From Isurus oxyrinchus (lineage: Eukaryota): 64,000 nucleotides of DNA. Below the pieces are notes generated by a model. It saw nothing but the letters and a program-made list of their open reading frames with translations. It made no database searches and was not told the origin of the DNA. Of the stretch, positions 14,095 through 59,542 are shown one piece after another (the first letter of the stretch is position 1; the number at the start of each line of letters is the position of its first letter). The position numbers were made by a program, and so were the translations under genes. The stretch is from positions 6,448,001-6,512,000 of the forward strand of contig JANJGN010000039.1 of NCBI GenBank assembly GCA_026770705.1, written 5' to 3'.

Positions 14095-14990
14095 TTAATT
14101 TCGTAGCGATTATGACCCTGTCCTGGGGAAGTTGCGGACTTTCCACCAGCAGCACGCGTTACCTGGTAGCCATGGCAACAGCGGATCTATTGGTCATTGT
14201 CACAGAGGTTATACTGTATCAGATTAATTATTACTTTTTTGCAGGATCATTCCTCGACATAACTGCTTTGTGTAGCGTTCTCAATGCCCTGACTTTTGCT
14301 GCCAGAGACTGTTCGGTGTGGTTCACTGTAACTTTCACTATTGATCGATTTGTCCTATCTGTTGTCAGAAGTTGGGAAGAAAATATTGCACTGGGAAAAC
14401 TGCGTCTGTGCTTCTAGCAACTAGTGGTATTCTGCTCTGTTTAAAAAATGTCCCCTTCTATTTCACCTATGAACCTGGAAGTATAATTAATGATGTTCCA
14501 TTCTTCTAGCTAAGTTATTTTATAGATCCAACTTGGGTGGGATTTGACTGGTTTTATAAACTTTTAACACCATTGATCCCATTTTTTTTCATTTTGTTGC
14601 TCAACACACTGACAATCAGGTACATTTTAGTCGCTAATCGTGTCCGTGATAGGCTGAAGAGTCAGAGGAATGGAGAGACTCGCAATGACCCACAGATGGA
14701 CAGCAGAAGGAAATCTGTGATTTTACTTTTCAGTCTATCCAGCTGTTTCATACTATTGTGGTCGGTAAATGTTACCGAATTCTTAACTTATTACATCACA
14801 GGAACAAATCCAGCAAATTACAGTGACGCTTCATATATTTTTCAACAAGTTGGTTATATGTTGCGGAATTTAAGTTGCTGCACAAATACAATTATTTATG
14901 TGGCGACGCAGCCCAAGTTTTGAGAGCAGTTTACCTGCATGGTGAAAAACATGGTTACATCACTCATTAAACAAAAATCACAAGCAACAT
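14095..14990 (+). pseudogene. GPR139/GPR142-like class A GPCR pseudogene (paralogue 1), exon 2 (TM1b-TM7)
   Basis: Acceptor ttctatttttacag|TT (phase 1) gives (V)NFVAIMTLSWGSCGLS..YLVAMATADLLV..CSVL..DCSVWFTVTFTIDRFV. Lesions: 1-nt frameshift at ~14355, TAG at 14507-14509, TGA at 14921-14923. Downstream motifs LTPLIPFFFILLLNTLT, DPQMDSRRKSVILLF and LSCCTNTIIY are colinear with the intact paralogue. 3' end approximate. Confidence 0.9.
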
Positions 14991-15049
14991 TGCTGAGCGT
15001 AACCCAGAGCCTGACCCCTACTGTTCTCAGACACAAATGGAACACTTAG

Positions 15050-15755
15050 AATCATAGAGTCCGTGTACATTCAAAGGCACCAGCAACGCAAAGTCTTTGC
15101 CTATCAACATCCTGCGGATTCCCATTGACCAGGTACTGAACTGGATCCACGATATAAATATTGTTGCAGCAGGAGCAGATCAGAGGCTGGGAGTCCTGCG
15201 ACAAGTAACTCACCACCTGCCTCCCCGAAGCTAGTCCACAATTTGCAAGGGACAAAACAGTAGTGCTATGGAATTCTCTACATTTGCCGTATTGAGCGCA
15301 GCTCCAAAAACACTCATGAAGCTTGAGAGCACCCGGGAGAAGCCAGCCCACTTTATTGACACCCATTCCATGAACGTTCCCTTCACTCAACTAGGAGGTA
15401 CTGCAGCAGCAGCGTGTACCACGTTCAAGATGCACCTCAGGAACTTTCCAAGGCTCCTCAGGCAGCACCTTTAAAAGTTATGACTTCTGCCAGCTAGAAG
15501 GACAAGAGTAGCAGATATATGGGAATATCACCACCTGCAAGATCCTGACTTGGAAATATATCACAGTTCTTCATTCTCGCTGGGCCAAAATTCTGGAAAT
15601 CCCTTCCTGACAACACGATGGGTGTACCTACACCACAGGAACTGCAGTGGTCCCAGAAGGCAGCGCAGCATTAACTTCTCAAAAGCAACTAGGGATGGGC
15701 ATTACATGCTGGCCTAGCCAGAGCAGCACTCAGTCAGTAAATGAATAAAAATAAA
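15050..15755 (+). mobile_element. Second LINE family (CR1-Zenon-like), 3' fragment, just downstream of pseudogene 1
   Basis: MEFSTFAVLSAAPKTLMKLES corresponds to the family motif MEYSPLAW-SAAPTTLKKLDTIQDKAA. Tail GGGATGGGCATTACATGCTGGCCTAGCCAG..AATGAATAAAA. Confidence 0.75.
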
Positions 15756-16239
15756 CTGGAATAAGATATGCTGGGAATGCCTGATTTAATGTTCTACTTT
15801 GTGTATTTACACTTCCAAACATTTAATTTATGATGCTTTCACTGCAAGAAACAAAACAATAATGAAAAAAAAAAACCGTCGTCGGCTAAACATGCTATTT
15901 TTAGAAACGTCATTGGCCTGTCAATGGTCGGTGTTCACTTTCGGAATGTTGCATGGTAAGGTGACTGGAAACTGATTTCCGGTCTCTTTTAAAGGTGCAT
16001 ATCTCCATCTTAACCTCTATTTCAAGAGTTGTTTAAAAATAGTATCGGCACCTCACCCTTACATAGATTTTGTTATACCCTTTTCATGGAACCATCTGCA
16101 GTGTTTAAAAGTCATCCGATTCTCGACTGCAATATCTAAGACAAAGCTGAACCATTCGGAGAAAATAACATTTACTAGGGGCATCTAAACATGTGTAGAA
16201 AACAGTCGACACGATTACGCAATCCTTTTGAATGTAACA

Positions 16240-17990
16240 TGCAAACAAATGTGAACTCAGCAAGTGTAGCACCAACTGTGGATACTGAAACCGTGTTAAC
16301 ATTTCGAATATTTAAGCCTGTTCTGCAGAGCTAAGGAGAATTAGAAATGTGATGGATTTTTTACACGTCAACAGAGGTTGGAGGAGTCATGGCAAGATAG
16401 CAGGTGAGGGATAGGTGCAAGAAGAATGACAAGAGATTCATGGAGAAAGGATAAAGTGAATGTTGACTGCATTGATAAAGACTAATGAAGATGCTGATCG
16501 TGCCATGAGGCTGAGAGAAGAATATGCTAATAGCAGGTCTGCAGGTCAAGGGCAGCGCTCTGTGAAAAGACAACATTGAAAAGAGTGATAGGTGGCTCTT
16601 TGAGTGAGTGAGCGGAGTTGAGTTGCTGGGTTTTATTGGGGGTGAATGATACAAACATGAACACAGATAAAAGTATTAAACGTATAAAGAGGTAAATAAT
16701 TGCACTAAATATAGGGTAAAGATAGAGAACAGAGCTCATGGTGTGAAGTTGTTGAACTGAAAGTAAAGTCCACAACGCAGTTAGGTATCTAACTGGAACA
16801 TGATGTGCTGATTTTCCAGTTTGCTTTTGACTTCACTGGAACGCCAATCCCCACACGGGAAAGACTTTTATTTTTGCACAACAATGACTGCATCATTGCC
16901 GCTTCACGCCCTCCTCCTGGCGTGGAAAATAAATATCGGTTTTACTTCCAATTTCCCTCGCATTCTCATGATCCACCTCTGACATATTATTTCCCTTTCT
17001 TGTCCGCTCTGCCTTCTTTCTGATGAAAGTCTCGATAACAATATTCATTACAAGTCCACCGACTGCTCCAGCCACTCGGGTTAAGCACGTTACACCCTGC
17101 TTGTGCTGAGGGTTCATCCTTTTCTCTCAGCCATTCCAGGTTCCTCGTATCTGTTCAGATGTTGCCAAAACGGCGCTTCTGGCATTTCTTCCTTTCTCCT
17201 TAACCGAGGACATTCTCCGCAACCCCTTGCCTGCTGAATGTGGTTGAGAGTGCCCTAAGCCGTGTCCAAGCCAATTCGGCCTCTCTGCCCTCTCTATCCC
17301 AGAACCAAGAAGGGTTCAGTTTGTGTCTCATCTAACCCCACTAGCCATCCCTGTACCATCCTCCGCCATTTCCGCCAAATCCAGCATGATTCCACCACCA
17401 AGCACGTTTTCCTTTCACCCCACAAATCACCCCAGCCCCAAGTGAGCACTCCCGAGCGACAGCTACTTCCCAGAGACCATGGTCCACTTCTCAATCTGCC
17501 GACCACCCCTTCTCCTCCCTCTGCAACTGCCCATGAAATCGCAGAAAGAGCAATGCCTGCCCCTCTTCCTCTCCACCTCACCATTCAAGGACAGAAACAC
17601 TCCTTTGAGGTGAAACAGTGCTCCTATTGCACCTCCAGCCAAGTTAATATACTGCATTCGTTGCTGTCAATGCGGCCTCTTCTTCTTTGGCGTGGCTGAA
17701 GCGGACCTTGCTGCTGAGTGAAATTTGAATGCCCCATCCTGCTCTCATGTCCACATGTCCAACCTTGACCTGCTGCAATCGTCCTGTGAATCCCAACGCA
17801 AACTGGAGAAACAACAAGTCATCTTCCGAGTGGACACTTTACAGCCTTTCGCAATTAAAAATGCGTTCAACAACTTCAGAGGATGAACTTTCCACTCACC
17901 TTTTGCCTTGTTAATTGGAGTGGTTTCTTCAAAATATTATTTTATATTTGTATTCATTTATGTTTATTGACTTTTTCATAATTTATTTTG
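16240..17990 (+). mobile_element. Penelope-like element (GIY-YIG endonuclease end) with inverted terminal segment
   Basis: 17330-17690 reads ILRHFRQIQHDSTTKHVF..LTIQGQKHSFEVKQCSYCTSS..(Y)CIRCCQCGL, typical of the Penelope RT-linker/GIY-YIG region. 16744-16845 is an inverted copy of ~17790-17880. Confidence 0.75.
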
Positions 17991-18329
17991 CAACAACAAT
18001 GCATCTATGCTAATTTGCCCTTAGCTCTCAGCTATCCCTGATCTTATATCTTGTGCAATCGCCTCCATGCCCTCGTCTATAGTGTAAACTACATGAGATA
18101 TACTTTGCAGGTCGACACTCCAAAGTTGTTGCCTGCAGAGGTCAATTCTTGAAGCTTGTCATTGGATGAAATTTGTTAAATTCAATGAACAACTGAAGTT
18201 GTCAAAGTGGGTTACTGAATATTTAATCCCCTATCTCAACCGATTTACTCTAGCTGAGCCGGGGCACTGAAACATTGAGCTCCATGACAATTCACGTGGC
18301 TAGTCAACCTGTGCCTGCAGACTCCCAAA

Positions 18330-20680: not shown

Positions 20681-21124
20681 TGCCCCAGAGGGCACAGGGG
20701 AAATGTATGAAATCAGGGTAGGAGTAATAAGGTTTTGGAAGAACTCCGTTTTACAGCAAAATGACTGGGAAAGAATAAATTATCGGCCCAGACGCCATAG
20801 CGGAAGCTGATAGCTTCACATCAACATTTTTTTTACAACTGACGTGAACAGCGATTTGAGCCTTTTCTCCATCTTAACAGGCGTCCACAAGATGGCGGAA
20901 ATATGGTAGAAATCATTCGGAATCTGCAAAATTATGGCTTCTTCCATTTCTGTGTTTTATTTTATCTTTCTCTGGGCGTTGGCTCTGTAGTTTTTCACAG
21001 AAATGATTCTTACAAAGACAAACTCTGTTTATGCACAGCACAGAGCTCCGGGGATTGGGAACTCGGGACTTTAGTTGCAGCTCATTAAACCAGCAACTTG
21101 ATTAAGTTACATGTTACTAGGTGC

Positions 21125-26734: not shown

Positions 26735-29035
26735 CTGACAGTGCAGCACTCCATCAGCGATGACAACTGAGAGTGCAGCAGTCCCTCTGCGCCAAGCCTC
26801 TGAAGGCCCTTCAGTCCTCAGTTCTGGCATTCCGAGAGTGAAGCGTTCCCTCAGTACTAACATTGTGACACTGCAGTGATTCTTCAGTGCACACCCTCCA
26901 GCAGTGCAGCACTCCCTGAGTACTGAACCTCCGACAGTGTGAAGCTCCCTCAGTGCTCATGTACCAACAGTGCGGCTCTCCCTCAGATTTGAACTTCCAA
27001 CTGTGCAGCCCTCCCTAAAAATTGATCCTCCAACAATGTGGCATTTCCTCAGTATTAATTGTCAAAACAGTGTAGTTTTCCATCAGTAGTGAGCCTCAGA
27101 AATGTGGCACACTCGCTTTACTGACCATTCGACAGTTTAAGAATTCCTCAGTTGTGGTCCTTCGACAGTGCATACAGTCCCACTGAACTGACCATCCAAC
27201 AGGGCGACATTCCCTTAGCCATCACCATATGACAGTGCAAAGCTCACGCACTAATGACCCACCGAGAGTGCAGCACTCCCTCAGCACCAACCCTGCGAAA
27301 GTGAAATGATACCTCAGTACTCGCCCTCCAGCAGTGCACCAGTCAATGATAACTGATCCTCTGTCAGTGCGGCAATCCCGCATTACTGGCCCTGCGACAG
27401 TGTAGCGATCCCTGAATGCTGATTCTCTGACAGTACAGCAGTCTCTCAGTGCTGACCCTGTGACAGTTCGGTAATCCTGAATTACTGGTCTTCCAACAGT
27501 AAGGTTCACTCTCAAAAATGAGCCTCAAATAATATGGCCCCCAAATTAGCACTGATCCTCCTGACATTCCAGTACTCATTCAGCACTGACCCTGAGAAAT
27601 GAGGCACAACCCCATTACTGTCCATCCAGTAGTGCAGCAATCCTTCAGTCATGGAACTTCGACAGTGCAAAACCTGGCCCTGCACTGACCCTGCAACAAT
27701 TCGCCCCTCCCTCAGTCCTGTCCACTCGACAGTGCAACGCTCGCTCATTATTGATCCACCTAGAGGACAGCACTTCCTCAGCCAGTGAGACTCTCCGTTA
27801 TTATTGACGTCCTGACAGTGTGGCATCACCTCAGTACTGACCCTCGGAATGCAGCAATCACTCATCACCTATTCGCCAACAGTGAAGCACTCCCTGCGTA
27901 CAGAGCATCGAAAAGCGCGGCACTCTTTCTGTACTGACACTCTAGCAGTGCTTCAAACTCTCAGTACTGGCCCTCTCGCAATGCAGCACTCCCTCAGTAT
28001 TGGCTTTCTGAGCTTGCAACCCTCCCACACTACAGGCCCTGCGACAGTGCAGCATCCTTCCAGCACTGCAACTCGAAAGAGCAGTACACTCTCAGCACTG
28101 ATAATGCAAAAATGCAGCACTACGTCTGTAAAGATACTCCAACATTCAAAAACTGCCTCAGCACTTACCTTGCAGCAGTGCATCACTCCATCGGCACAGA
28201 CACTCCGTCATTGCATCAATCCTCAATACTGACTCCCTGAGAGTTCCGTAGTCCCTCAGTACTGACTCTCCAACAGTGCAGCGATCCCTCAGTGCTAACC
28301 CTGTGAAATTCCAGCGCTCCCTCAGTACTGACCCTCTGAAAGTAGAGAACTCACTCACTGCTCACAATCTGAGAGCGAAAATCTCCCTCAATTCTGACTC
28401 TCTGACAGTTCAGTGCTCCCTCATTACTGGCCACCAGACAGTGCAGCAGTCCCTCATTGCACACCCACTGAAAGTGCAGACTCCCTCAGCCCTGAAGATC
28501 TGACAGTGCAGCACCCCCTCAGCATTTGCCCTCCTAACAGTGCAGCAAATGCTCAGTTTTGACTCACTGACAGTGTATCTCTCCCTCAGTACTATCCATC
28601 TGACTTTGCAAGACTCCTACAGCACTGACCCTCTGACAGTGCAGCGCTCCCTCATCACTGACCGCCTGACAGTGCGGCGTTCCCTCAGTACTGACCATCT
28701 GAAAGTGCAGCAATCCCTCAGCACTGACCGTTTGTCAGTGCACCACTCCCTCAGTGTTGACCTTCGCACAGGACAGCACTCTCAGCACTGCCCATTTAGT
28801 GGTGTGTCACTATCTCAATACTGAGGTTCCAACTCTGCAGCACACCCCCACTATTGACTCTCTTGCTGTGTAACACTTCCTCACTACCGACACTCTTGCA
28901 GTGAAGGGATACCGACCCTCTGGCAGTGAAGGGATCCTTCTTTTAATGACCCTCAGACAGGGCAGCACTCCCACAGTACTGACAGTCTGGCATTCGGAAA
29001 ATGCTGCAATAAAGGCCCTCAGGCAGTGCAGCATA
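26735..29035. repeat. 33-bp minisatellite (~70 degenerate units), unit similar to part of the SINE Deu domain
   Basis: Consensus GACAGTGCAGCACTCCCTCAGTACTGACCCTCT. Units start at 28635, 28668, 28701 and 28734 (period 33). Confidence 0.95.
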
Positions 29036-31379: not shown

Positions 31380-32270
31380 GGGCTGTAGTGAGAGAAGAAA
31401 ATGGGATCGAATAACTGAGGAAAGGTGAATGTAGCAGCTGAGGGAGTTGTAGTGTAGTTACTGAAGAGAGTGTGATGTAATGACTGAGAGAAGCATGCTT
31501 TGGGAGCAGGATGAAATCACTGAGGGAAGTTGGGTTTAGTGACTGAGGGAAGATTCCTGTCGTGACTTATGGAGTAGGATGTAATGACAGGGAGAAGTTG
31601 AATTTTGTGACTTTGGGATTATGATGTAGTGACTTAGGGAAGTAGGATTTAGTAACTGAGGGGTTTGGATGTAGTGACTGAGGGTTGTGTGATGTCATGA
31701 CTGAGGGAAGCATAATGTAGCGACTTAGGCAGCAGGATGTAGTCACTGAGGGAAGTGGGATTTAGTGACTGATGGAATAAGATGTAGTGATTGAGTGAAG
31801 TGGAATTTAGCGAGTTAGGGAAACATTCTGTAGTGACTTAGGGAGTATAATGTAATGGCAGGGTTGAGTGTTATTTAGTGACTGAGGGATTAGGATGTAG
31901 TGACTGAGGGAGGTGGGATTTAGTGATTGAGGCATTAGGTTTTAGTGACTCGGAGAAGTGGGATTTAGTTAGCGTGGGAAGCATGCTGCAGTGAATTAGG
32001 AAGTAGGATACAGTGACTGACAGAAGTGCAATGTAGTTACTGAGGGGCGTGGGCTGTAGTTACTGATGGGAGTCGGATATATTGTAAACAAAAACATGAG
32101 ATGTAGTTACTGGAGAGAGTGGAATTTGGCAAATGAGAGGAAGGCAATATATTGACTGAGGGGAGTTGGATGTAGAGACGAGGGAGAAGAATGTCATGAA
32201 TAAGGGAAGGGTAATATATTGACTGAGGAGAGTCGGATGTCGTGATTGAGGAGGGAGGAATGTAACATCT
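31380..32270. repeat. 22-23-bp purine-rich minisatellite (~38 degenerate units)
   Basis: Consensus TGTAGTGACTGAGGGAAGTGGGA, e.g. consecutive units through 31669-31960. Confidence 0.92.
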
Positions 32271-32954
32271 CAGGAAGTCCCAAATGCAGCGACTGTGGGA
32301 TTCCGTGGTGAAAAGGTGTGTGATTCAATGACAGAGGCGTGTCCGAGGCAGCGACTGGAAGACATGGGATGTCGTGCCCGAGGGCAGTCGGACATACTGT
32401 CTGATCTGTAGAGCTCCGAGCCTGTCTCCATTAGGGAAATATCCCGATTGATATTCTGCAAGACATTAAGTGGAAGGCCTCACACTACTGCATCTTGTGT
32501 TCCAGTGAATTTTAGTTACCAGTCACTTCATTTGTCTATAGGAGTTTTTTTTTCAGAAATTCTACCCCCATCTAATAAACTTCCTGTCCTTCCTAACTTC
32601 CTGTCAGCTGAAAATGTGAGCTTATGTCCCTCTGTTCCTTTTTACAAGTCATTACTAGACGACAAGAAAATGTAGTTCTGATCAGTAAATGAACTAATTT
32701 CCCTCAATGTGCCCAAATCTTCAGAATATTTGATTGCACAAATATTAGCAGGTTTCCGCATTGAACTCTTCGAAACCAAGACAGCAATACCACGAATTCT
32801 GACTTGTGACCTGCAGAACAAGGCGGCTGTGATTCCCTGTGCTGGAGTGTGAGGTACCTTGGCTGTGAATTTATTGACACGAGCACAGATATGTTGGTGC
32901 CAATTTCGTTTCTTCCAACTGTTTGTTCACTAGACTGACACTAACACCCAGCCT

Positions 32955-32992
32955 TACCCAATTGTCTGGGGGTTTGCCATGGGTATAAGTAA
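32955..32992 (+). promoter_or_regulatory. Candidate core promoter of the intact GPCR gene (CCAAT + TATA-like box)
   Basis: CCAAT at ~32958 and TATAAGTA at 32984, ~69 nt upstream of the ATG at 33053 (context GAAAATGG). Position-based inference only. Confidence 0.45.
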
Positions 32993-33052: not shown

Positions 33053-33122
33053 ATGGAACAAGCCCCAATTCAGCAGATCGGGAAAATTTACTACTGTATA
33101 CTCGCAGCGCTAGGAATACCCG
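33053..33122 (+). CDS. GPR139-like: GPR139/GPR142-like class A GPCR (paralogue 2, intact), coding exon 1
   Basis: MEQAPIQQIGKIYYCILAALGIP + G|GTAAGA consensus donor at 33123 (phase 1). Resembles TM1 of GPR139 (VYYSLLLCLGLP). Confidence 0.85.
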
Positions 33123-33574
33123 GTAAGATATTGATTTGGATTAAATCAGTTATAGCTCCAGCTCAGGACGTCTGTTATGCTGTTCTCTCATTACTGCAAA
33201 TTAATCTAAGCCCCCAGATGAGATTAGGGAAAGAAATGGTGTCTAGTTCACAGTGCTGTGAACAAATGCTCGCCTAAAACACTGTTGCTAATGTTCTCAG
33301 TGGCTAAAAATCTCTTTACACCTTTCAGCTCTGTTTAATGTAGCATCTTACCTTTCAAGTTTTAATCGACCTGCTCAAATATCGCGACTGCCTCGCTCTC
33401 TCAATATGATCTAGTTTGATAACTTTCTTAGCACCCTGTGTTCCTCAGATTCTTATCCCTGCTAATTCCTGGCTGCCTTCATCCCACCATTTGCAGCCCT
33501 ATATTCAGTTTCAATGTGTAAAGCCAGGAGTTTCTTGGCTGATGATTGTCTAATTCCGACTGCAATTAGTGACC

Positions 33575-33722
33575 NNNNNNNNNNNNNNNNNNNNNNNNNN
33601 NNNNNNNNNNNNNNNNNNNNNNNNNNNNNNNNNNNNNNNNNNNNNNNNNNNNNNNNNNNNNNNNNNNNNNNNNNNNNNNNNNNNNNNNNNNNNNNNNNNN
33701 NNNNNNNNNNNNNNNNNNNNNN
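33575..33722. other. Assembly gap (N run) inside the GPCR intron
   Basis: 148 consecutive N. Confidence 1.
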
Positions 33723-33723
33723 T

Positions 33724-33881
33724 CCCACATCACTCCCACACCCACAAACACACACAGAAACACAAACACACACACACACACATACACACACACACACACA
33801 CACAAGTCCACATAGAGCCTCGCACACTACCACCCACCCACCCACACACACAAACACGCACATAGAAACACAAACAGACAT

Positions 33882-33914
<33 letters not shown>

Positions 33915-34050
33915 CACAGACTCACAGACCCACAGAGAGCCCCCCCGCTCCCCCCCCCAACACACACACACACGCACAAACACTCACACACACAATCGCA
34001 GACCCACAGAGGGCACCCGCGACACACACCCACAAACGCTCACACACACA
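33724..34050. repeat. Compound (CA)n microsatellite
   Basis: Imperfect CA run adjoining the gap. Confidence 0.95.
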
Positions 34051-35569
34051 GATCCATTAAACATAGTCCATGTTGGCTTTATTTCCAACATGCTCTGTAT
34101 CTGCAGAATAATAACACACTGCTCAGTCTAAAATAAACTTGCTTAATGAATTGCAGCTGATAAAATAAACACTGCGTGCAGTATTATTTATTCTGTGTTC
34201 GCTGTATTAGCCTGCTGAAAGATATACTGCCACATTGGAATTTCAATGAGACTCTTACTCACCCTGACTAAAGCGACCGTCAATACGAAATGTGCAGTCA
34301 ACAGTGCTCAAATTAATTTGCTGTTGCAGGGCACCGTTAAGAAGTGGATTATATTCATGTGTCGACCAGCTAGCACTCTCTTCACATGCAGTATAAATTG
34401 TCGCTTTTCCTGGTATATTGCTATTCCAGGGAAGTGTCCTGATGAGTACAAGACAATAATCTTCGACATGTTTATTATTCAGTAACAGTCAAATGGATAA
34501 TAATTGCTGCTGTATAAACTGTCAATATATTACCTTTCCTGTAGTGCTTTCAGCATTGAACATGTTTGCTGTAGCGTGCTGTTATCGGTAGAATGGTTGC
34601 TTTGGTTTTCTGTTGAAATAGACTGCTCGCTCTCCGTTGCTTGACTCATTTCCTTAGGTTAATTTCCTTATGAAACGGCTATTTTTGCATGTTATTAAAT
34701 AATGTATTGACTGTAGTATCCTTTCAAATATACAGTGCTTGCTGTTTGCTCCTCAAATGTTCCCGTTTCACTGCTTACTGTGAAAATGGAATTTTCTTTA
34801 AGATATTCCATTATCTATCAAAGCAAATTATTTGCTTTTAAATTTAATTATCAATCCCACTGTCCCTACAACTAATGAGCTGAACGGGTTGGTGCCTTTA
34901 GGATCTCTGTGTCCTTTATTTAACACCAGATTTCGGTATGTGTTCTGTTTGTGTTTAATGTATATGCTATTTCTTTGTAAATGGGCAATTTAGTTAAGAA
35001 GGAATGGAGGGATGAACCTGCCAGTGGGATGTGCTAACCCCTGGATGCATTGCCCTCTGGTGCTGAATAAGCACATGTTGGACTTCAGAAGCAGAAGGCT
35101 GTATTTGCATTTTCAATTGGTACGGATTGTGAAAGCACTTCAGATTCGAATGGATATTAAACATTCCATTGTCAATATTAAGACAAACGAGCATTGAACA
35201 GTTCATCAATGCAACCAGGGCGACTTCGGTGCCTCTACGCCACTGGGAGTGCAGAGAGCGGCAGTTGGAGGACATTCAACCCCTAAAACCTGTTCCCACA
35301 ATCATTTGTATCAGGATGAATCTCACCCCATAGTTTTCAAAACCCATGATCTCACAATGCAAGTAGCAATGTCTCTGCAAATTTCGAATTGTGCCTTAGC
35401 ATCGATTTCAAAGGTCGAGATGACTTTGTAAATGTACCCCAAACTTCACAAGAAAGGAAATGCCTTCTGATTTACACTCCTGAGCGTATCTGCTTTAAAT
35501 TAGTATTACAGCCACATGTCCTTACCAGGCTATCAGGTTTGGTTAGGTTGGTTCTGGGATCACAATTGT

Positions 35570-35812
35570 CCTCGGCAACCACGGGACTCCTCTTCAAAAC
35601 ACCATCAGGGGAATTTCTTTTCATCCATGTGAGCGATTTGATAGGGTGTTGGATTGAAGGCCTCGCCTAAAACGTGGTATGTCCGGCCATGCAGCGTGCC
35701 CTCAGTTCTGAAGCAGCAGAGAGGTGCATCAATAACTGGCCGAATCCTCTGAAGTGGGTTTAGAATCCAAAGCCTTGTGCCTCAAAGCAGTAATGCCTAT
35801 CCATTGAGCTCC
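35570..35812 (-). mobile_element. Decayed Deu-domain SINE (tRNA-like head + Deu domain)
   Basis: Plus strand CTCTTCAAAACACCATCAGGGGAATTTCTTTTCATCCATGTGAG..TCCGGCCATGCAGCGTGCCCTCAGTTCTG..GAAGTGGGTTTAGAATCC..CCATTGAGC follows the recalled antisense DeuSINE consensus. Confidence 0.55.
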
Positions 35813-35999
35813 GGAACATTGCTGGAATAGTGTGTTCAATGAAGGCCGGATCTGTGCAATTCCATGAATTGCTCTGACTGTTCTACAAGTTCACATTTTT
35901 CATGCATTCTGGGCTTAAGGTCAGATTCTCAGGGTCAATGCAGAGAGGTTCAAATGTGGCATCTCGAGTTTGATCATGTCTGGATTGCGCCAAGATTTT

Positions 36000-37340
36000 C
36001 ATTGGAGAAAGTGGAAATAGAAAAGTGGTCAGGGTAGCAGCGGGAATTGCAGGATGAAAGTAATCCAATTTCCTGGAATTGGGGAACAGCTCTAAGTGCT
36101 AGGCCCTAATTATAAAGGAAGGTATGTACCTCAAAAGTAACTTTAACTAATGTCATCGCAGAATGTTTAATAGTGTTGGCAGGGGAGGGCTTACATTAAA
36201 TTTGCATGGGGATGTCAATAAATACATGGAATTAAAAACGGTCATAATGTGTCGGGGTTGAGTAGTGATTGAGAAGGACGCAGCACCAGGTGAGTTATGG
36301 TTGCAGAAACAAGGGGCAGCATGACCAGGAGGGCTACAAAGACAGGGTCAGAATTTGTGCATGTATGAACACAGAATAAGGCTAATGCTGGCTCGCATGG
36401 CCTGCAAATAGCTGTGTGGATATGCTGTTCAATCAGTGATGGAACATTGGCAGAGACATGGTGAGGACTGGCTGCTTTAACACAATTGCTCAAAAATGGT
36501 GGGTAAGGTAAATTGGGTGAGGGGGCGTGGAACAGTACAGATTGAGAAACCCATTGCCGTGTTGGAAAGAGCAGATGTCCGTGAAAATGCGAGGAGGACA
36601 TGAATGATGGGGAGTGGAGTGTCGAGTGCGAGGCGTGGGGATTATTCTGTAGACCTCCCAGTAGTGACAGAGAGATATTGGAAAAAAAACGGCAGGGAAA
36701 GTACTTTGATTTATTTGTACTGTGATAGTGGTGATAGTTGTGGGTATTAAGTTCCGAGATTATGAGTTGGATAAGGCAAGGGATACTTAAACGGAGGGGA
36801 AAATATTTCTGAAATGTGTTGAGGAAAACAGCCATGATCAGTATGATACTGGACAGGGCTGGAATAACGTCAGGGCAAACTAGGCAGTTCCCACACTGGC
36901 AAAAAATTAAGGGCCTGTTGCAGCAAATATTTGAATGACATATTTAAAATAGCCCTTGGCGGTGGTCCTGAATGGTCGACATTTAATGTGGTACATGTAC
37001 CTATAGTACACACACGTTGATATCCATGCTCTTGTGATGTAGGTTTTACAAAATGCCATCGTTTTCATAGTATATAGGCGTAAGTAACAGATAGAAGGCT
37101 TAAGACGAGAATTGACGAGATCTTCTTTCGCCCAGAGAGTGGGGGATTCTGGAACCCCCTGCCTGAAAGGCTGAATGTGTCAGAAATTCTATTAACTTGT
37201 GAGGAATGGTTGGATATTTACATGCATTGCCAAAGTTTCCAGGGTTAACGGAGTAACTCTGGGAAATGAGATTCGTGCAGTAAAATCTTTGTTGATATGC
37301 GCAGGCATGATGGGCTGAAGTGCCTCCTTCTGTGCTGTAA
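36000..37340 (+). mobile_element. Decayed CR1 LINE fragments (ORF1/endonuclease region and 3' end)
   Basis: Endonuclease-like remnants (ATTGGCAGAGACATGG, TTCTGTAGACCTCCCAGTAGT, TTTCTGAAATGTGTTGAGGAAA). 3' UTR TGGGCTGAAGTGCCTCCTTCTGTGCTGTAA at ~37311-37340. Confidence 0.6.
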
Positions 37341-38009
37341 TCGTCCATGAGTCCACTCCTCATCCTGTTTAGGTACACATTTGCAAATCTATGCATCTCA
37401 ATGACCTTTTATCCAAACTGTGACACTTTAAATAACATGAAAGAATGTAAGCAAATCGAGCAGACTGCATGGTAATCACTATTGATTGTACAGATTACAC
37501 GTAAATTCATCTTGGATTGGTTACAGGAAGACATGATTTGAGCTATTTTCAACAGTGGAACGTTCATATCTTCAAGTCGATATACTAGAAACGTACTGGA
37601 CAGTGGGATTATAACTTCACCATAATTATATTTTGTACTTCCAACAAAATAATTCTGCAATTATCAATGTAGATCTTCTACCCATATTAATGTATGATAA
37701 TAATTTTCAAAATGTAATTGCTGTTCTTGGTTGGGCTTTGGATGCTGGTGCATGTGCAGGTAAGGCTCACTGTTTCGCATAGGGCGCCACGATTCATGCA
37801 CTGGTCTTTTCAGTTGCACTTATTATGCGAAGACTTACGTTTTTGAAATCAAACACCATGTTAATAATCCTTTATTTAAAGCGAGTGTGCTTAGAAATTA
37901 TCTACATAAGAAGACAATGACCTAACACCTCTGTCTCAGCAAGAAATTAAATTTGCAATGAATTTTGAAAATTCAGTGTTTAAGGCAATGTTCCAACCCA
38001 TTAACAAGC

Positions 38010-38310
38010 TTGGCTTAATACTGGAGAGTGGGCCATGCATATTTCAAGAGTAATGCACACTGATTGAAGGTGAGCTGCATTCTTGAACTGCTGCAGTGCA
38101 TGTGGTGTAGCTACACCTACAGTACTGTTAGGGAGGGAGTTCGAGGATCTTCACCCAGCGACAGTGAAGAGACGTTGATGTGATTCCAAGACAGGGTGGT
38201 GAGTGTCTTGGAGGGGACCTTACAAGTGTTCCTGGTAGCGTTCATGGGTTCGGAATGTGTTCCCTAGGAAGGCTTGATGAGTTCCTGCCGTGCATCCTTT
38301 AGATGTTTAG
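38010..38310 (-). mobile_element. Second LINE family 3' fragment, close to the exon 2 acceptor
   Basis: TTCTTGAACTGCTGCAGTGCATGTGGTGTAG..GGGAGGGAGTTCGAGGATCTTCACCCAGCGACAGTGAAG is the reverse complement of the family 3' end. Confidence 0.75.
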
Positions 38311-38640
38311 GGGGTGGATGCACTGAATGTTCGTGGACTGCTGTTTGTTTAGAACGTGTCTCAGTTGATGGGACTTTGGATTCTGAGGTAACAGATGGCG
38401 CCTGGTTGGTAACTTTAATACAATTACAAGTCTAAAATGTTGAAACAAGAGTCGAGGAATGAAGGAGTTTGACGGCTTGGGTGTTTTCTTCATCTGGAGG
38501 GTGTTTCGTAGAAAGGGAATGAGGAATGCATTGAAGGGGCTCAAATGAGGAATGTTGCTGTTTCTGGTTTCGCAGTCATACCATGATTTCATTCTTGGTG
38601 AATGCTATTGCTGACACCAGTTATCCTCTCTTTATTACAG

Positions 38641-39518
38641 CCAATATACTCACAGTCCTGGTCCTCCATTTCAGGGACTGTGGTCTCTCCAAGGGCACCA
38701 CCATCTATTTGCTGGCAATGGGCATGGCCGACCTGCTGGTCCTCATAATCTACGTCCTGATCACTCGCATTCTCGTTCCTGTGTTTCCAGAAGTGTTTTA
38801 CAGATATACCTTGGCCTGTCGTCTCAACCTGATCGGGATTTCTGCCGTGATCGACTGCTCAGTCTGGCTCACGGTTGCCTTCACTTTCGATCGCTTTGTG
38901 ATCATATGCTGTCAGTGGTTTAGAAGATTGTACTGCACCCCCAGATCCGCCGCTCTGCTAGTTGGGCTGATTTACCTCCTGTCTTATTCCAGGAATATAC
39001 CGTATTACTTCACAGTCCTTCCCGTGTCTGCAAACATTACCCCGCAGATGGGATGCCGGAACAATCCCTACATCTACTCAGCAGCGGCCTGGAGATCCTT
39101 CTATTGGATCCATACTATTTTAACCCCCTTATTTCCTTATATCATGGTGTCTTTGCTCAACCTTTTGACAGTCAAGCACATTCTGAGGGCCAGTCGTGTC
39201 CGCCAGGGTTTTAAGATGGAGGGGTGGTGCGACCCCGAGATGCAGGGTCGGAGAAGAGCCATGGTCTTGCTCTTCAGTGCCTCATCCATTTTCATCCTGC
39301 TGTGGATGTCAACGGTGGGGATCTTCATTTTCTCACGGATCACTGACCAATTCAGTTACAGGTGTTTCAGCGACCCATTCTTTGTCATGAATGAAATCGG
39401 CCGCATGCTCAGGGTACTGAATTGTGCGACGAGCACCTGTATGTACGCTCTTACCCAGTCCAAGTTCAGGACAGAGCTAAGGAGAGCGGTCCAACGTGGC
39501 ATCAGTCTCATCAAATAA
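38641..39518 (+). CDS. GPR139-like: GPR139/GPR142-like class A GPCR (paralogue 2, intact), coding exon 2; spliced CDS 948 nt = 315 aa
   Basis: Acceptor tcctctctttattacag|CC joins exon 1 in frame (GIP|ANILTVLVL, cf. GPR139 GLPANILTVIIL). Open to TAA 39516-39518 with seven hydrophobic segments: YLLAMGMADLLVL, DCSVWLTVAFTFDRF, IPYYF, WIHTILTPLFP, SSIFILLW, LNCATSTCMY and helix 8 SKFR. Confidence 0.93.
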
Positions 39519-40769
39519 CGTCTTGCCTATGTGACGATATGAACTTGGGGGCAAGTGATCAGGATGTCAACCTACCCTGTTAAATCAGCTTAATCAATTT
39601 GTAATTAATAGCAAACTCATTGCAACATTAATAAGCCTCTTATTTCAATCCGACACTGTCTCTAAAGTCCAGAGTGAGTCTATGATGTCTCTTCATTGCT
39701 CTTTATATTCCACCATTTGTATCTTATTGAACTAGCAAGTTTGTTGACCTTTCTGATTTTGTTTTTTTTTCAATTCCTGATTTCCACTTTTTATTTAAAG
39801 CCACACTTTTTATTCAATTTACCAAATCAACGTTATGGTGCTCTGGCCTCGCACCTATGTCTCGGGCTTTATTTTAGTGTATGTTGTTGTTTCTGATTGG
39901 GGCATGCAGGTTGAAATTTCACATGGAGTTCAAAGATGTTTCTATAATTCTTTCCAGCGGATCTTTCGCCTTGTCCATGCTTCATTACACAATACTCGAT
40001 CTAAACTGGATTATATCAGAAGGGCAGTATTCCATTACCTTTCACTTTCTCTTTAGATTTCTCAATATCTGTTAAACTGAAACACCCCTTCCTCCAACCC
40101 CACGTCTTGTTACATGCGGAACAGCTAGGTCCTGGAAGATGTCATGCAAAAAGTCTACAAATCTGTCTCCTATGTCCCATTGGCACGGATTCTGTCCAGG
40201 TTTACATGAAGATTGAAGCCCCCAAATTTGTGAATTGTCTCTTCAACAATCTCCAGCAATGACTTGCTTTATGCCCTTTGCAATGTTATAACCGCTGTTG
40301 GCGGGGGGTGGGGAAGGGTGCATATAAAGTAGTCCCTCCGGCCTTACATTACACTCGCGGTTGCAAACTTCCAACAATTGCGAACCTGATTCTACCTTGG
40401 TCAAAGCCTTCTGCTATTTTTTTAAGTTGGGGAAAAAAATCACCAAAACTTTTCAGCAACCAGGCAGAACAATGGAAGAGGTGAAAGAAAGTGATTCAGC
40501 ATCTAACCTAAATGGCAAATCCACCATTGGCGTTTGCAAAATAGGCTCGAATATTTTCTGAGTAAAAGTGAAGCTTTTCGTCTTGCACTCATCAGGAAAG
40601 ATGGAAGAATGCCAAAGTTCAAAGGGAACAGCAATGTAACCTGCACGGGAAAAGTGTGCTAATTCTATAGAAAGTGGGCTTTGACGTGCCAAGGTTTTTT
40701 TTTTTACCTTGGAGAATGCATCAGGGAATAGTTCCCCTAATCCGAAGGATTTTGCTTAAATTAAAAATA

Positions 40770-41414: not shown

Positions 41415-42325
41415 CGATAAAACATAAGAGCAACAATTTGGCCTTTTGACCCATTGAGTCTGCTCTGCAAATTGAATCATGGCTGATAAGTTTCTCAACT
41501 CCATTCTCCTGCCTTCACCCCATCACCTTTGATTCCCATAACAATCGAGAACCTATCTCTCTCGGTCTTAAGTTTCTCCTCATCTCTGTTCTTAGAGGTC
41601 TTCCCTTTACTCTGAGGCTGTGCCATTAGGTCCTACTCTCTCCTACTAATCGAAACATCTTCCTCACGTCCACTCTGTCCAGGCCTTTCAGTATTCTGTA
41701 ACTTTCAATCAGATGCCCCCTCAGCTTTTAAACTCCATCGAGTACAGAGCCAGAGTCCTCAAACATTCCTCATATGTTAAGCCGTTCATTCCTTGGATCG
41801 TTCTCGTGAACGTCCTCTGAACCCTCTGCAGGGCCAGAACATCCTTCCTGAGATACGGGGCCAAAAAGTGCTCACAATATTCTAAATGTGGTCTGACCAG
41901 AGCCTTATAAAGCCTCAGCAGCACATCTCTAATTCTATATTCTAGTCCTCTAGAAATAAATGCCAACATTGCATTTGCCTTCCTAAATACCGACTCAACC
42001 TGCAAGTCAACCTTAAGAGAATCCTGAACTAGAACCACAAAGGCCCTTTGCAGACAAGATTTCTGAATTCTCTCCCTATTTAGAAAATAGTCTATGCCTC
42101 TATTCTTAGTACCAAATTGCATGAACTAACATTTCCCCGCCTTGTATTCCAACTGCAACTTCTTTGCCCATTTTCCTAACCTGTCCAAATCCTTCTGCAG
42201 CCTCCCCGCTTCTTCAATACTACCTGTCCCTCCACCTATCTTCGTATTATGTACAAACTTAGTCATGATGCCCTCAGTTCCTTCATCTAGATCATTATTG
42301 TATAAAGTGAAACGTTGTAGTCCCA
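41415..42325 (-). mobile_element. CR1 LINE, 5'-truncated, relatively well preserved
   Basis: YNNDLDEG..TKIGG..LQKDLDRLGKWAKK and KANAMLAFISRGLEY..LYKALVRPHLEYC..LQRVQRTFTR. Confidence 0.92.
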
Positions 42326-53780: not shown

Positions 53781-53813
<33 letters not shown>

Positions 53814-54319
53814 GCCAACTCCAATAACCTATCAGGTTGCACATTTGTTCTGCCACCCATTCGCTACATGAACAAAAAGCTCCTCATGTCAGTTGTACTG
53901 TTATTAGTAAGAATCTGGGGTAATGCTCCTCTAGTTATCGACCTCTCATATACTGGCATTCGTTACTCCAACCTCAACATTGCTCTCCAATCTCCTCTTC
54001 ACCCGCTGTCCTTTGATTCGAGGGTGATGTTCCCACAGGGTATGGATTTCCTCCGAAGTGTCTTCATGTGGGATGAACAGGCCCAGTCTCGACTCACGCA
54101 TCTTTGACAGATGGTGACAAGCCATACCAAGCGAAAAGGAAATGCAGGTTTTGAGTCTTAACTTCTCTGGCTCATTATTAAGGCATTGGTACCCTAGATA
54201 TCATGGATCCCTGCTGATACCTGGTGGCAATTCAGAATCGTTGGGAACAATCATCCCGCCCTTCAAGGTCAAAGCAGCCACATTTCAAGGGACATACTAG
54301 ACATATTATGTACATATGA

Positions 54320-55530: not shown

Positions 55531-55554
55531 AAAAAAATAAAATCGTGCATGTAA

Positions 55555-56474
55555 TGTTACTGGAACTTATTTCAGCATAGAATATAGAGGTGTCNNNNNN
55601 NNNNNNNNNNNNNNNNNNNNNNNNNNNNNNNNNNNNNNNNNNNNNNNNNNNNNNNNNNNNNNNNNNNNNNNNNNNNNNNNNNNNNNNNNNNNNNNNNNNN
55701 NNNNNNNNNNNNNNNNNNNNNNNNNNNNNNNNNNGTTTCTGTTTGTCTTATTTGGGTCAAATGCAGCTGGTCTAGAGGCCATGACGTATATAAGAGAGGA
55801 AGCTTTGTAACGGTAATTAGATAAACATAGGGAAATAGAAGATGCGGGGTCAATGGGGGAAATTTGCATTCTTAAACCTGCTCTTCAATAGAGCTGGTGA
55901 CATTTTTTCCCTAAACAGCTGAAGCTCAGAAACTTTTTTTTTCGAAGCTTATTAGTAAATTTAGTATCTTAAGAGGATTTTATTGTTAGTAGGTTAAGGT
56001 TAAAATATTATAGTTACAATGGGAATTTGCATGAAAGAGGAAAACATGTGCAAACAATAGAAGGATTTTGGGAAAATAAGGAGGGGTTCTAAAATCTAAC
56101 GCCTCCAGGCTGAGAACCTCACGTCTGTCTGCAAGGACGCCGAGATGAAGGAAACTCATTTTGAATGTGACTGCCAGCTGTGTGTTTTTCCTCTTGCCTT
56201 ACCAGGGGTCTAACTGAGAGTCGGATTAATTGGATTTTTTGAGTTATTGGAGTACCAAATTTGCAATCGTATGTAAGGAGTTACCCATTTCTTGTATTAA
56301 TAAATGTTTCATTTGGTTTAATTAATAAATAACCTTGCACTGTGCTGGTGTCATTATTTCTTTTGAAAGCCTGCAATGCAAAAAATACGAATTGCAAAAT
56401 TCGGTTGTGACATTGTTTCAATTTCTCTTCTTGATTTTAACAACTCAACCTTTATCCTCGGCAGTTTCATAGCA
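55555..56474 (+). mobile_element. Possible solo LTR spanning the gap
   Basis: TG..CA ends (TGTTAC..TTCATAGCA), internal AATAAA signals at ~56299 and ~56323, and short similarity to 22719-23747. No TSD found. Confidence 0.3.
55595..55734. other. Assembly gap (N run)
   Basis: 140 consecutive N. Confidence 1.
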
Positions 56475-58219
56475 CCCTCATAAAATTGTGCGTCTCTACC
56501 AGTTCCATTCAATTTACCCACGTCCCTTTTTAGCCTCCTTGTGAAGTATTTTCTGTGTCCTTCAATCCGCACTTGGCCAAATTAGAGTTCAGATTTCAGA
56601 GCCATGGGATAAGCTTTGACCAACTCGTAATCCACGCATTGTAACGAGACGTTTTCACTGATCAGAAGTAGAGTCATTGTCTGAAAAACAAATTGTCAGC
56701 ACAATTAGGCTCAGCAGTGCTTGTTTTTCTGCTGTTTCCTGTATCAGAAAATAAGTAGTACACAGCCTCTGATGTTCAGTCTCATGAACGTCAAATGACA
56801 GACGAGATACCGATCAAGCGGATGCTTTTGGATAGGATCTGCATTTTCTGCACAGCAGGCGGCTATTGGGTTGTTATGTCTGTAGTGGTTCAATTTAGAG
56901 CTACTAAATACAGCTCGTCACTGCAACTGCCCATTCCTGTGGAATCCCCTTTCTCACGGCATTAATTCAAGATCCTTTTGAAAGCTACAATTGAATGGGC
57001 TGCCGTTAATGCAGGGAATTACTGATCATAAATGAAAACCGCGTCATCTTCACTCTGGTTATTTATTAAAGTAAAAATATACCTCTATTCTCTGTTCACA
57101 GAGCTTTCATCTCGTGAAACCATGCTTTTTTTTAATATCTCAAGCTCAATCCCACTTTTCAGCACCTTCACTCTGTGACCTTTTACCCTCTCTGCATTCA
57201 GGCAGCAATCCCAGCTCCACCAGTAGTTCCACAGGCCTGAAGTCCCACAACCCGGCCAGCATTCCCGCTCAAGCTTCTGCAGAACTCTGGGCTTCTGCTG
57301 CACATTAGGAGGTCAGAGTTAGGAACACACCTGGCAAGGCACAAACAACGTTTTTTTTTCCAATTTATTAGGACTTCCATGTTTCTGTTCTCATGACTGC
57401 ACAAAGAAACCTGCTATTATGCTTTTTCCAGCGATCTTGTAAACCTGAACTGCGACCTTGAAAATCTTAATGTGTAACGTCCACATCCACCTATTTTCCT
57501 TTATAAATTGCACCGAATGTCTTCTCCACACTCTTTTGTAGGAAATTTCATCTGCCATGTGTCTAATGATATCTCCTTTCAAGTCGATATTTATTCACTA
57601 GCCTCCTTTTTCTTCAAGCTAGGAATATATTCGTTCTAGACTACGGTCTCCCGAAATCCCTTCTCAATCGACCCGAAGTTGACTAGGTTCCATTTGCAGG
57701 GGTGAACAGCTCTCCTTTTAAACAGTGCGTAACGATCATAAATGTGCAGCCCTACGGAATGGCTCAATATATAATGAGGAATGAAATGTGTTGGCCATCA
57801 TCTCAATTGTTTCCATTATTCATTCCCTCAGCATCCCTTGTACGTCCGCCATGTTGGGTATACGTTCGAATTTTTTTCGAAATATGAAAAAAAATGTTCT
57901 TGCATTTCAAGGAATGAACTGAATCTGTTTGTTCAGTGAACATAATTGATGATTGTCTCCCTCGGGTCTGATTGTCTCACTGGAGGATTTGCTCCGCCCT
58001 TGATAAGTGGGTCAATTCAACGTGTCCTTCTGTTACATTTGGGAGGGCATCACCATCAGCACTAAGAGTGTTGATTTAAAGTTTGTAAATTTCCTTTAAA
58101 CTTTGTTCTTGGTTTTTTACAGCTGACCTGAATTAGGGGCTGTGCCTGATTTATCCCAATTTTGCTGATTTGGTTTTCATTTAAAAGATTATCAGCACTA
58201 AGAGGGATCAATGACTCCA

Positions 58220-58331
58220 CTGAGAGAGTCAGAGTTAGAGGGAGAGAGAAAAAGAGAGAGAGGAAGATAGATAGAAGTAGACAGTGAGGGAGAGTGGGAG
58301 AGAGAGAGAGAGAAAGATAAAGAGAAAGAGG
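58220..58331. repeat. (GA)n-rich tract immediately upstream of pseudogene 3
   Basis: Imperfect GA/AG run visible directly. Confidence 0.85.
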
Positions 58332-58457
58332 AGGAATCAGAACGTGAGAACAAGTGACTTGCATGATCGACCAATGAATCAGTAACTGAGAACAACAGTT
58401 TGGAATGTTACAACAATGAATCAGAATCTGAAAGCAATGGGTTCGAATGTTACAACA
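58332..58457 (+). repeat. Three 42-nt tandem units encoding the receptor N-terminus
   Basis: Units at 58332, 58374 and 58416 translate RNQNVRTSDLHDRP / MNQ*LRTTVWNVTT / MNQNLKAMGSNVTT, in frame with TM1. Confidence 0.8.
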
Positions 58458-59542
58458 ATGGAGAGGAGTTTATCATGGGCGCTGTTCCAATTATCATTTA
58501 ACTATGACTGACTAACATTGGCTGACCGGATGCGATTTGCACTTCAGGTCATTCAGGCGGGTTACTATCCTTTTCTCGCCCTCGTTGGTGTCCCTGGTGA
58601 AACTGTCTATCTGACCATTGATTCGATGACCCATGTTTAACTGAAGTAACTGGATTTTGTTATTTAAATATTGAGAAGGCTGAAGCCAGCACCTTGATTT
58701 CCCATCACATACACTGGTGCAGATCTATTGAAGTCATACTGAAGGAGATGCTGGGTATTTATTTTCCGGATTCATTCTTGACAATGAGCACGGTGTGCCA
58801 TCTAACTGACACATTGATTTATATATTCACATCAGCCGCTGTCTGGTTAACAGTGGCGTTCACATTTGATCGTTTTGTGGCGATATGTTGTCAGGAGCTG
58901 AGGAAAAAATATTGTACAGAGACAACAGGCGCAGCTGTCATATGAGTAGTGAGTGTTTTGAGTTGTTTGACAAACATTCCCTAGTATTTTGCTTATGAAA
59001 CTCTATATATATTTGGCAATGTACCTCGCGGTTGCAAATTAAAACAGACATTTTTCAATTATGCTGAATGGGCTGCATTTGATTGGTTTACCCTTACTTT
59101 GACCCCATTTGTTCCATTCATTTTAATTTTGTTGCTAAATGTTTTGACGGTGAGACGTATTTTAGCTGCCAGTAGAGTTCGCAGGGGTCTCCGCGGTTGC
59201 TGCAATGGAGAGCATCACAATGATCCAGAGATTGAAAGCCGAAGAAAGTCCATCATTTTACTGTTCAGTATAACCGGCAGCTTTATGTTGTTCTGGGCAG
59301 CTCCGGTTTTATTTTATTTTATCACCCTGCGTACAGCAATCATTTCATATTCTGGCACTAATGAACTTGAGTCATTGGGATTCATGCTTGGGCTCCTCAG
59401 TTGCTGCACAAATACATTCATTTATGTGCTGACACAGTCTAAGTTTAGGGAGGAGCTGAAGAACGGAATGGTGCGTAAAATTACTCAAATTACAGCTGAA
59501 AACCAATTGACATATGCAGGAGGACAGAAACATTGTGCCTGA
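58332..59542 (+). pseudogene. GPR139/GPR142-like class A GPCR pseudogene (paralogue 3), exon 1 plus 5'-damaged exon 2
   Basis: Exon 1 reads ..MERSLSWALFQLSFNYD*LTLADRMRFALQVIQAGYYPFLALVGVP G|GTGAAA (donor 58597). Exon 2 is readable from 58727 (IEVILKE..VCHL..AVWLTVAFTFDRFVAICCQ..YCT). In-frame stops at 58383, 58509, 58943 and 58982. C-terminal half LTPFVPFILILLLNVLT..DPEIESRRKSIILLF..LSCCTNTFIY..QSKFREELK. AATAAA at 59666. Confidence 0.92.

Follow-up and report, generated by a model that had tools for sequence, protein, structure and literature searches.

The 64,000-nucleotide (nt) window analysed here, positions 6,448,001 to 6,512,000 of the forward strand of Isurus oxyrinchus contig JANJGN010000039.1, contains three class-A G-protein-coupled receptor (GPCR) paralogues, which we refer to as copy A, gene B and copy C. 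On balance, we think it probable, with modest confidence, that they represent three old subfamilies of a large orphan GPCR family and that gene B is a live receptor with one conserved ligand. Gene B would be a functional two-exon gene encoding a 315-aa seven-helix receptor that binds its ligand in the usual transmembrane pocket, and it would signal via a G protein through a near-invariant face comprising DRF, Asn5.58, Thr5.61, Leu6.37 and Tyr7.53. We suggest that it is not a fast-evolving odorant receptor and that it recognises a single conserved ligand, which could be a fixed cue or a molecule made by the animal itself. Copies A and C, together with an isolated exon 1 on the minus strand, are dead relics, showing that the cluster loses genes of this family as well as gaining them. 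The big subfamilies, those of copies A and C, have strongly variable pockets and may respond to many different ligands.

A tblastn search of the window with the 311-aa open reading frame (ORF) at 38583–39518 returned three plus-strand homologues and nothing else significant, namely copy A (14091–14971), gene B (38583–39515, with zero lesions) and copy C (58727–59491). The three same-strand paralogues lie 20–25 kb apart and share 41.7–45.6% pairwise protein identity and, with the lesions mapped as described below, the arrangement proposed in the earlier note holds, with one intact gene and two pseudogenes that are co-oriented and strongly diverged from one another. Gene B scores 53.9 bits against the Pfam family 7tm_1 (PF00001; cutoff 30.5), which places it in class A; the long ORFs of copies A and C reach 28.3 and 25.2 bits, respectively, and remain under the cutoff because they are fragments. 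The family signature motifs listed in the earlier note were also found, except that CGLS is absent from copy C and QPKF* replaces QSKFR in copy A. Searching the window with 120 family proteins added one further piece, an exon-1-like relic on the minus strand, giving a total of one intact gene and three dead copies.

Gene B belongs to a large family. A word-indexed protein search, made like the other searches, the fold and the tree with the two exons unjoined, returned 611 proteins at E<=1e-3. The 120 of these that were listed (P0001–P0120, species labels assigned by hand from the listing) are all elasmobranch save one eukprot entry, and include 32 from Heterodontus francisci, 30 from Heptranchias perlo and 16 from Pristiophorus japonicus. 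The proposed lineage expansion is supported in that the family is large in elasmobranchs, with at least 30 distinct proteins in each of two species among those listed. Such genes are indeed automatically annotated as GPR139, as the earlier note states, since nearly all of the listed proteins carry the name 'probable G-protein coupled receptor 139'. When cluster representatives at 50% identity were searched exhaustively, 655 matched at E<=1e-3, of which 148 also reached E<=1e-10 and 82 reached E<=1e-30. Among the 30 representatives looked up were more elasmobranch genes under assorted automatic names, as well as non-elasmobranch relatives at 23–33% identity from coelacanth, salamanders, gar, bichir and two teleosts; true GPR139 and GPR142 were absent from these 30. 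A crocodile protein matched in part (32% identity), and lamprey, amphioxus and invertebrate receptors are more distant relatives.

Further family members go under the names 'vasopressin V2 receptor-like' and 'neuropeptides capa receptor-like'. In addition, two Heptranchias perlo models, P0013 (488 aa) and P0014 (543 aa), carry extra N-terminal sequence before the family receptor, which in P0014, named 'C-C chemokine receptor type 3-like', appears retroelement-like by eye. Such mixed names indicate that the automatic naming of this family is unreliable. A literature search on GPR139 and GPR210 in combination with shark, elasmobranch, expansion and fish olfactory epithelium found no description of an elasmobranch expansion, and in PMC12294341 GPR139 appears only in a reference. 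In the sources searched, the elasmobranch family exists as automatic annotation only; it is a large, unstudied orphan class-A GPCR family.

The name raises the question of whether gene B is the orthologue of GPR139 or GPR142, with its neighbours as decayed duplicates, which we consider extremely improbable and which for GPR139 is contradicted. Human GPR139 is indeed the best match to gene B by sequence among solved structures (47.8 bits, E 1.3e-11), and GPR139 likewise has two exons (PMC7318219). However, the high conservation that would mark GPR139 orthology is not found: the same source gives 70% identity between human and zebrafish GPR139, compared with 23–24% for gene B in the structural alignment. 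The coelacanth (117 bits) and salamander (100 bits) genes are nearer to gene B than human GPR139 is, and the coelacanth, bichir and gar proteins themselves score only 35–70 bits against human GPR139, so that these three are not true GPR139 either. Furthermore, there are hundreds of closer elasmobranch paralogues, the copy number is clearly not one, and two of the four residues of the GPR139 agonist site differ. Judged by sequence comparison with GPR139, the window genes are thus its distant relatives and not its orthologues, in line with the earlier note.

The phylogeny was computed as a quick IQ-TREE run on 109 rows: of the 120 listed proteins 97 were taken, and to these were added nine outgroup sequences and the three copies from the window. 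For the tree and for the entropy analysis below, listed proteins of 285–348 aa were used and 23 fused or truncated models were excluded. The root is an Artemia receptor, the outgroup branches are long and meet at the root, and GPR139 and GPR142 lie outside the row set. The elasmobranch rows form one clade (Shimodaira–Hasegawa-like approximate likelihood ratio test (SH-aLRT) support 95) that is sister to the salamander genes (99), and the coelacanth and gar/bichir groups fall outside this elasmobranch and salamander grouping. Gene B resides in an 11-row clade (100) together with Heterodontus, Scyliorhinus, Mustelus and three rays, with 1–3 genes per species. Copy A falls in a separate 20-row clade (100) that includes a ray, and copy C sits on a long branch (0.72) with no resolved placement. 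The clades of A and B each contain sharks and rays. Because the three copies fall in different old subfamilies, two of which span sharks and rays, the array is an old mix rather than a set of recent tandem duplicates, and the rapid recent turnover that had been proposed for it is not upheld.

The gene model of gene B differs from the ORF that was used as the query. Searching the window with the N-termini of 14 relatives located the peptide MEQAPIQQIGKIYYCILAALGIP at 33053–33121, which a hidden Markov model (HMM) of exon 1, built from 58 peptides (those of the 120 N-termini that fit a pattern), scores at E 9.6e-13. Coding exon 1 (33053–33122, plus strand) thus comprises MEQAPIQQIGKIYYCILAALGIP and the first base of an Ala codon, and is followed by the donor CCCG/GTAAGA, with cleavage after 33122. 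The phase-1 intron (33123–38640, 5.5 kb) ends in a strong acceptor that lies within the ORF, ctctttattacag/CC AAT (ttattacag/CC AAT, 38640/38641), and coding exon 2 (38641–39518) runs intact from the second half of transmembrane helix 1 (TM1) to the C-terminus and a TAA stop. The split codon G+CC encodes the Ala of the family P-A-N motif, which places the intron in phase 1, one residue before Asn1.50. The resulting protein has 315 aa (23 + 292, by arithmetic), in agreement with the figure given previously. The orthologous proteins start M-E-x-A-P-I-L-Q-I-G...G-I-P-A-N, with which the window ORF aligns poorly over its first 19 residues. We do not accept this 311-aa ORF as the complete gene, its first 19 codons being read-through of the 3' end of the intron.

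This model has independent support from runs X1–X3, DNA runs with one common organism label, each of which diverges from the window by ~3%, the positions being common to all three. In these runs the ATG at 38583 is GTG, and the 58 nt before 38641 contain a 1-nt deletion and a 5-nt insertion, which indicates that these 58 nt are non-coding; in the 878-nt exon 2, no indel is common to the runs. The ~3% difference itself means that a diverged population or a closely related organism is the source either of the runs or of the window assembly. The two exons are linked via the scaffold across an assembly gap (33575–33722), and P0001 and P0005 are the best matches of both, which is consistent with one gene but not proof of it. 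The gap lies inside the intron, where it is adjoined by a (CA)n array (33737–33994). Also within the intron is a high-copy repeat (~38064–38255), for which the summed contig depth in the three DNA runs is ~3-6 x 10^5 compared with ~30–50 in the flanks; it is probably a short interspersed element (SINE)-like sequence, and was also seen in run X9, a guessed RNA run.

The AlphaFold model of the exon-2 product (67-row alignment) has a mean predicted local confidence (pLDDT) of 85.6 and a predicted template-modelling score (pTM) of 0.83, and shows a helical bundle with a beta hairpin in extracellular loop 2. The folded product starts in the middle of TM1, the first half of which sits on exon 1. Foldseek matches the model to at least 500 class-A GPCR structures (E<=1e-3), returning peptide-type class-A receptors (ghrelin, opioid, thyrotropin-releasing hormone, somatostatin and cholecystokinin). 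GPR139 (7vui and 7vug) ranks 5 and 40, with the top identity among the 50 matches listed (23–24%). The family of gene B retains D2.50, D3.49-R3.50 and W6.48, has DRF and Asn5.58 and no Pro6.50, and carries N/S-T-x-x-Y where other receptors have NPxxY. We take these microswitch changes to be variants, the charged core not being lost.

Across the family, the pocket and the signalling face vary to very different degrees. With helix numbering anchored on motifs (Asn1.50, Asp2.50, Arg3.50, Pro5.50, Trp6.48 and Tyr7.53), the mean entropy over 98 elasmobranch sequences is 2.13 bits for 26 pocket positions versus 0.45 bits for 30 core and intracellular positions (Mann-Whitney p 1.6e-7), and 1.81 bits for the outer versus 0.77 bits for the inner helix halves. 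DRF, Asn5.58, Thr5.61, Met2.46, Thr3.43, Phe3.46 and Tyr7.53 are invariant across the family, and the intracellular face, including Leu6.37, is almost invariant. A variable pocket over an invariant face would fit many ligands acting through one transducer. In the large clades, Asp and Glu abound in the pocket (5.39, 5.42, 7.35, 7.36 and 2.57).

Within the gene B clade, this family pattern vanishes, with a pocket entropy of 0.94 against an overall mean of 0.86. By this numbering, the pocket of gene B is lined by Tyr2.57, Asp3.37, Tyr5.39, His5.42, Thr6.51, Glu7.36, Arg7.39 and Arg7.42, and most pocket residues are common to seven of the eleven clade members, the window copy included. Tyr2.57, Tyr5.39, Thr5.43, Thr6.51, Ser6.58, Asn7.35, Glu7.36, Arg7.39 and Arg7.42 are shared by the window, Heterodontus, one further species and rays, and His5.42 is Arg or Gln in two rays. 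Thus, the diversified pockets described in the earlier note are a property of the family as a whole and do not extend to the orthogroup of gene B. A pocket that is stable between the window, bullhead shark and rays, in a group with 1–3 copies per species, leads us to suggest that gene B is a one-ligand receptor. Such a low-copy orthogroup with a conserved pocket is the opposite of fast tuning, and argues against it for this gene.

What the ligand might be cannot simply be transferred from GPR139. The agonist site of GPR139 comprises F109 (3x33), H187 (5x43), W241 (6x48) and N271 (7x38) (PMC5430874), and the corresponding residues of gene B, assigned from the HMMER alignment and the motif numbering, are Ser87 or Ile86, His177, Trp241 and Arg274. 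Only two of the four are kept (His at 5x43 and Trp at 6x48), and the Trp is generic to class A. Hence, aromatic amino-acid sensing does not simply follow by analogy with GPR139.

A different reading is that the whole family, gene B included, constitutes a chemosensory repertoire of olfactory, gustatory or solitary chemosensory cells that offsets a small repertoire of olfactory receptor (OR) genes, each cell expressing one or few receptors tuned to amino acids, amines and peptides in water. We regard this as a possibility to be taken seriously, but not as the probable one. The size of the family, the clustering of its genes, the presence of pseudogenes and the strong pocket variation above an invariant transducer face would all be in keeping with it, and the Asp/Glu-rich pockets of the large clades would suit cationic ligands. 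Sharks have 2 OR and 7 OR-like genes (PMC11979771), and GPR139 and GPR142 respond to L-Trp and L-Phe (PMC7318219). However, a pocket that varies more than the core is expected in any GPCR family with several ligands and is not specific to chemoreceptors, and the pocket of gene B is conserved across sharks and rays. In the sensory-organ passages of PMC11979771, supplements aside, catshark olfaction is assigned to type 2 vomeronasal receptors (V2Rs) and this family is not named; neither 'GPR139-like' nor 'coupled receptor 139' occurs in the text.

A putative core promoter, TATAAG (32984–32989), lies 64–69 nt upstream of the ATG of gene B, preceded by CCAATTG and a G-rich site, and the combination of TATA, CCAAT/homeodomain-like and G-rich sites could be taken as favouring a chemosensory gene. 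A 35-nt block (TTCCAAyT...ACTA.GACTG.ACTAACA) is common to the upstream regions of gene B (32913–32947) and copy C (58485–58518), and may be part of a promoter module; its core in gene B can equally be read as a CCAAT box. The similarity is marginal, the score being reached in 14 of 500 shuffles, and between gene B and the orphan exon there is no significant link (307 of 500 shuffles). An OR-style promoter common to the window copies was therefore rejected, and this weak similarity speaks against the chemosensory reading, as does the finding that gene B is in no run recorded as RNA. The more specific proposal, that the elasmobranch 'GPR139-like' family comprises unrecognised vertebrate chemoreceptors, expressed in olfactory or other chemosensory cells of sharks and rays, with the acidic pockets of the large clades tuned to waterborne amines, basic amino acids or peptides, thereby filling the gap left by OR genes and trace amine-associated receptors (TAARs), seems to us rather unlikely. 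Overall, the chemosensory interpretation is plausible but unsupported, the features of the family being compatible with it and not demonstrative of it.

Several observations weigh against a live, ligand-specific gene B. Its terminal branch is long (0.43 versus 0.087 for the Heterodontus orthologue), and it has seven private changes at sites otherwise invariant in the clade. The listed exon-2 differences from X1–X3 (part of a list with 38 more across the 1.9-kb stretch 38000–39900) number 26, of which 16 are nonsynonymous and 10 synonymous. The resulting pN/pS of ~0.49 does not lie significantly below the neutral value (one-sided binomial p 0.063), so that recent constraint is weak. In one X1 contig a 1-nt insertion occurs at 39111, within 28 nt of where the contig ends; it may be an artefact or a heterozygous frameshift. 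The gene B exon is found in no run recorded as RNA; runs X7–X14 contain next to none of its words, and run X9 covers only the intronic high-copy repeat. In addition, the link between exons 1 and 2 spans an assembly gap, and the pocket positions derive from our own Ballesteros-Weinstein numbering and a generic list of class-A contacts.

Taken further, the same data could mean that gene B is a young pseudogene, with an ORF that is no longer under selection and no working receptor in the window. The pN/pS, which is not significantly different from neutral, the long branch, the RNA result and the possible insertion would all accommodate this, as would the listed divergence of the exon (26/878), which is close to that of the adjacent intron (10/321). 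We nevertheless consider such recent decay quite improbable. The 878-nt exon has no stop in the window and no indel common to the three runs, compared with two indels in the 58 nt upstream, and the start codon and splice sites are intact. All examined family-invariant residues are kept, the pocket residues match those of the orthologues, and the seven private changes compare with 0–6 in the other ten members of the clade.

The remaining copies are multiply broken, as expected from the earlier description of pseudogenes within the cluster. Copy A is an exon-2 pseudogene (14095–14971, plus strand) that a -1 frameshift near 14355 splits between two frames and that is further interrupted at 14507 (TAG) and 14921 (TGA); it keeps a phase-1 acceptor (tttttacag/TT AAT) at 14094/14095. 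Searches of the window with the N-termini of relatives and with the exon-1 HMM gave no convincing exon 1 for it; the candidates at 13746–13823 and 8044–8085 (E 0.43 and 0.12) were rejected, since they have no ATG or donor. Copy C consists of an exon-1-like piece (58530–58596, plus strand; MRFALQVIQAGYYPFLALVGVP + G) with ATG...GVP+G and a kept GT (HMM E 1.5e-4), an intron remnant of ~53 nt (58597–58649, limits approximate, set by eye against the codons of copy A) and an exon-2-like pseudogene (58650–59542) with a degenerate intracellular loop 1 and TM2 and a 2-nt insertion near 58731. Stops are present at 58943 (TGA) and 58982 (TAG), and the degenerate 5' part adds those at 58638, 58647, 58665 and 58695. 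A processed, intronless retrocopy is disfavoured, as the region measures ~122 nt where 86 would be expected and contains donor-like and acceptor-like remnants. We favour a collapsed intron, the DNA being too decayed for certainty. The phase-1 intron that the paralogues were said to share is thus seen as an acceptor in copy A, as donor and acceptor in gene B and as a remnant in copy C.

The orphan exon-1 relic (20878–20947, minus strand; MEEAIILQIPNDFYHISAILWTP + G) lies between copy A and gene B, with its donor GT mutated to TT and no exon 2 downstream on the same strand. Its HMM score (E 0.085) is weak taken by itself, and the peptide resembles exon 1 of the gene B orthogroup (50% to P0010). 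Two further minus-strand matches were dropped, one at 3248–3352 that is confined to the N-terminal region of model P0014 (543 aa), retroelement-looking by eye, and one at 61763–61882 with 30% identity that contains stops.

The window as a whole has a G+C content of 40–45% and two N gaps. The second gap (55595–55734) falls between genes, 2.8 kb upstream of copy C. Coding sequence is untouched by either gap, and the reading frame is therefore not at stake. No other named gene was found in the window, and the other large ORFs gave only one weak Pfam match, to RVT_1 (26.2 bits, under the cutoff). This match is the ORF at 1397–1798 (plus), one of three retroelement-like ORFs between the receptor copies; the others, at 12917–13495 (plus) and 41721–42122 (minus), encode a similar peptide by eye and matched no Pfam family. 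Two minisatellites are present, one at 28252–28795 (33-nt unit, 16.5 copies) and one at 31498–32046 (units of 23, 45 or 113 nt) that ends ~1 kb upstream of gene B exon 1.

Among known receptors, GPR139 is nearest to gene B by sequence among solved structures, yet at only ~23–24% identity. Residue R244 (6x51) of GPR139, which we take to be functionally relevant, is Thr in gene B. F109 (3x33) and N271 (7x38) are replaced by Ser or Ile and by Arg, respectively, and gene B has DRF in place of DRY and Asn in place of Tyr at 5.58 relative to GPR139. Like gene B, GPR139 is a two-exon gene (PMC7318219), lacks Pro7.50 and has His at 5x43 and Trp at 6x48; GPR139 is single-copy, whereas gene B belongs to a multigene family.

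A closer parallel may be GPR210A and GPR210B, orphan receptors that a 2019 survey placed next to GPR139 and GPR142 in coelacanth, gar and a few ray-finned fishes (PMC6504862). In our tree, the 'GPR139' proteins of coelacanth, gar, bichir, teleost and salamander surround the elasmobranch clade at 23–33% identity, and the coelacanth, bichir and gar proteins, like the shark genes, are far from true GPR139 (35–70 bits). We infer, with the identifiers of the two groups unmapped, that the elasmobranch family probably corresponds to the GPR210 group in expanded form; elasmobranchs have dozens to hundreds of these genes, whereas the GPR210-like group has one or few per genome.

With its dozens to hundreds of class-A receptors and their diversified pockets, the family is an obvious candidate for a sensory, neuroendocrine or immune role. 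To this the window contributes the correct two-exon model, in which the phase-1 intron falls just ahead of Asn1.50, and evidence that what is mixed in the clusters are very old subfamilies and not recent duplicates. It also adds a conservative low-copy subfamily, that of gene B, with a pocket stable across sharks and rays, which makes it the most tractable member for ligand finding.

With the OR and TAAR repertoires, the family shares its multigene organisation, genomic clusters, pseudogenes and a variable pocket over a conserved signalling face. It differs in that the window family has two coding exons with an intron in TM1, and in that the intact window gene is a conserved low-copy orthologue. 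Moreover, OR and TAAR are absent from the solved-structure matches and from the 50 listed fold matches, which indicates no close sequence relationship. Cartilaginous fishes have very few OR genes, and their olfaction is assigned mainly to V2Rs (PMC11979771). If the chemoreceptor reading were true, the family would supply odorant coverage that cartilaginous fishes, with their tiny OR and TAAR repertoires, otherwise lack.

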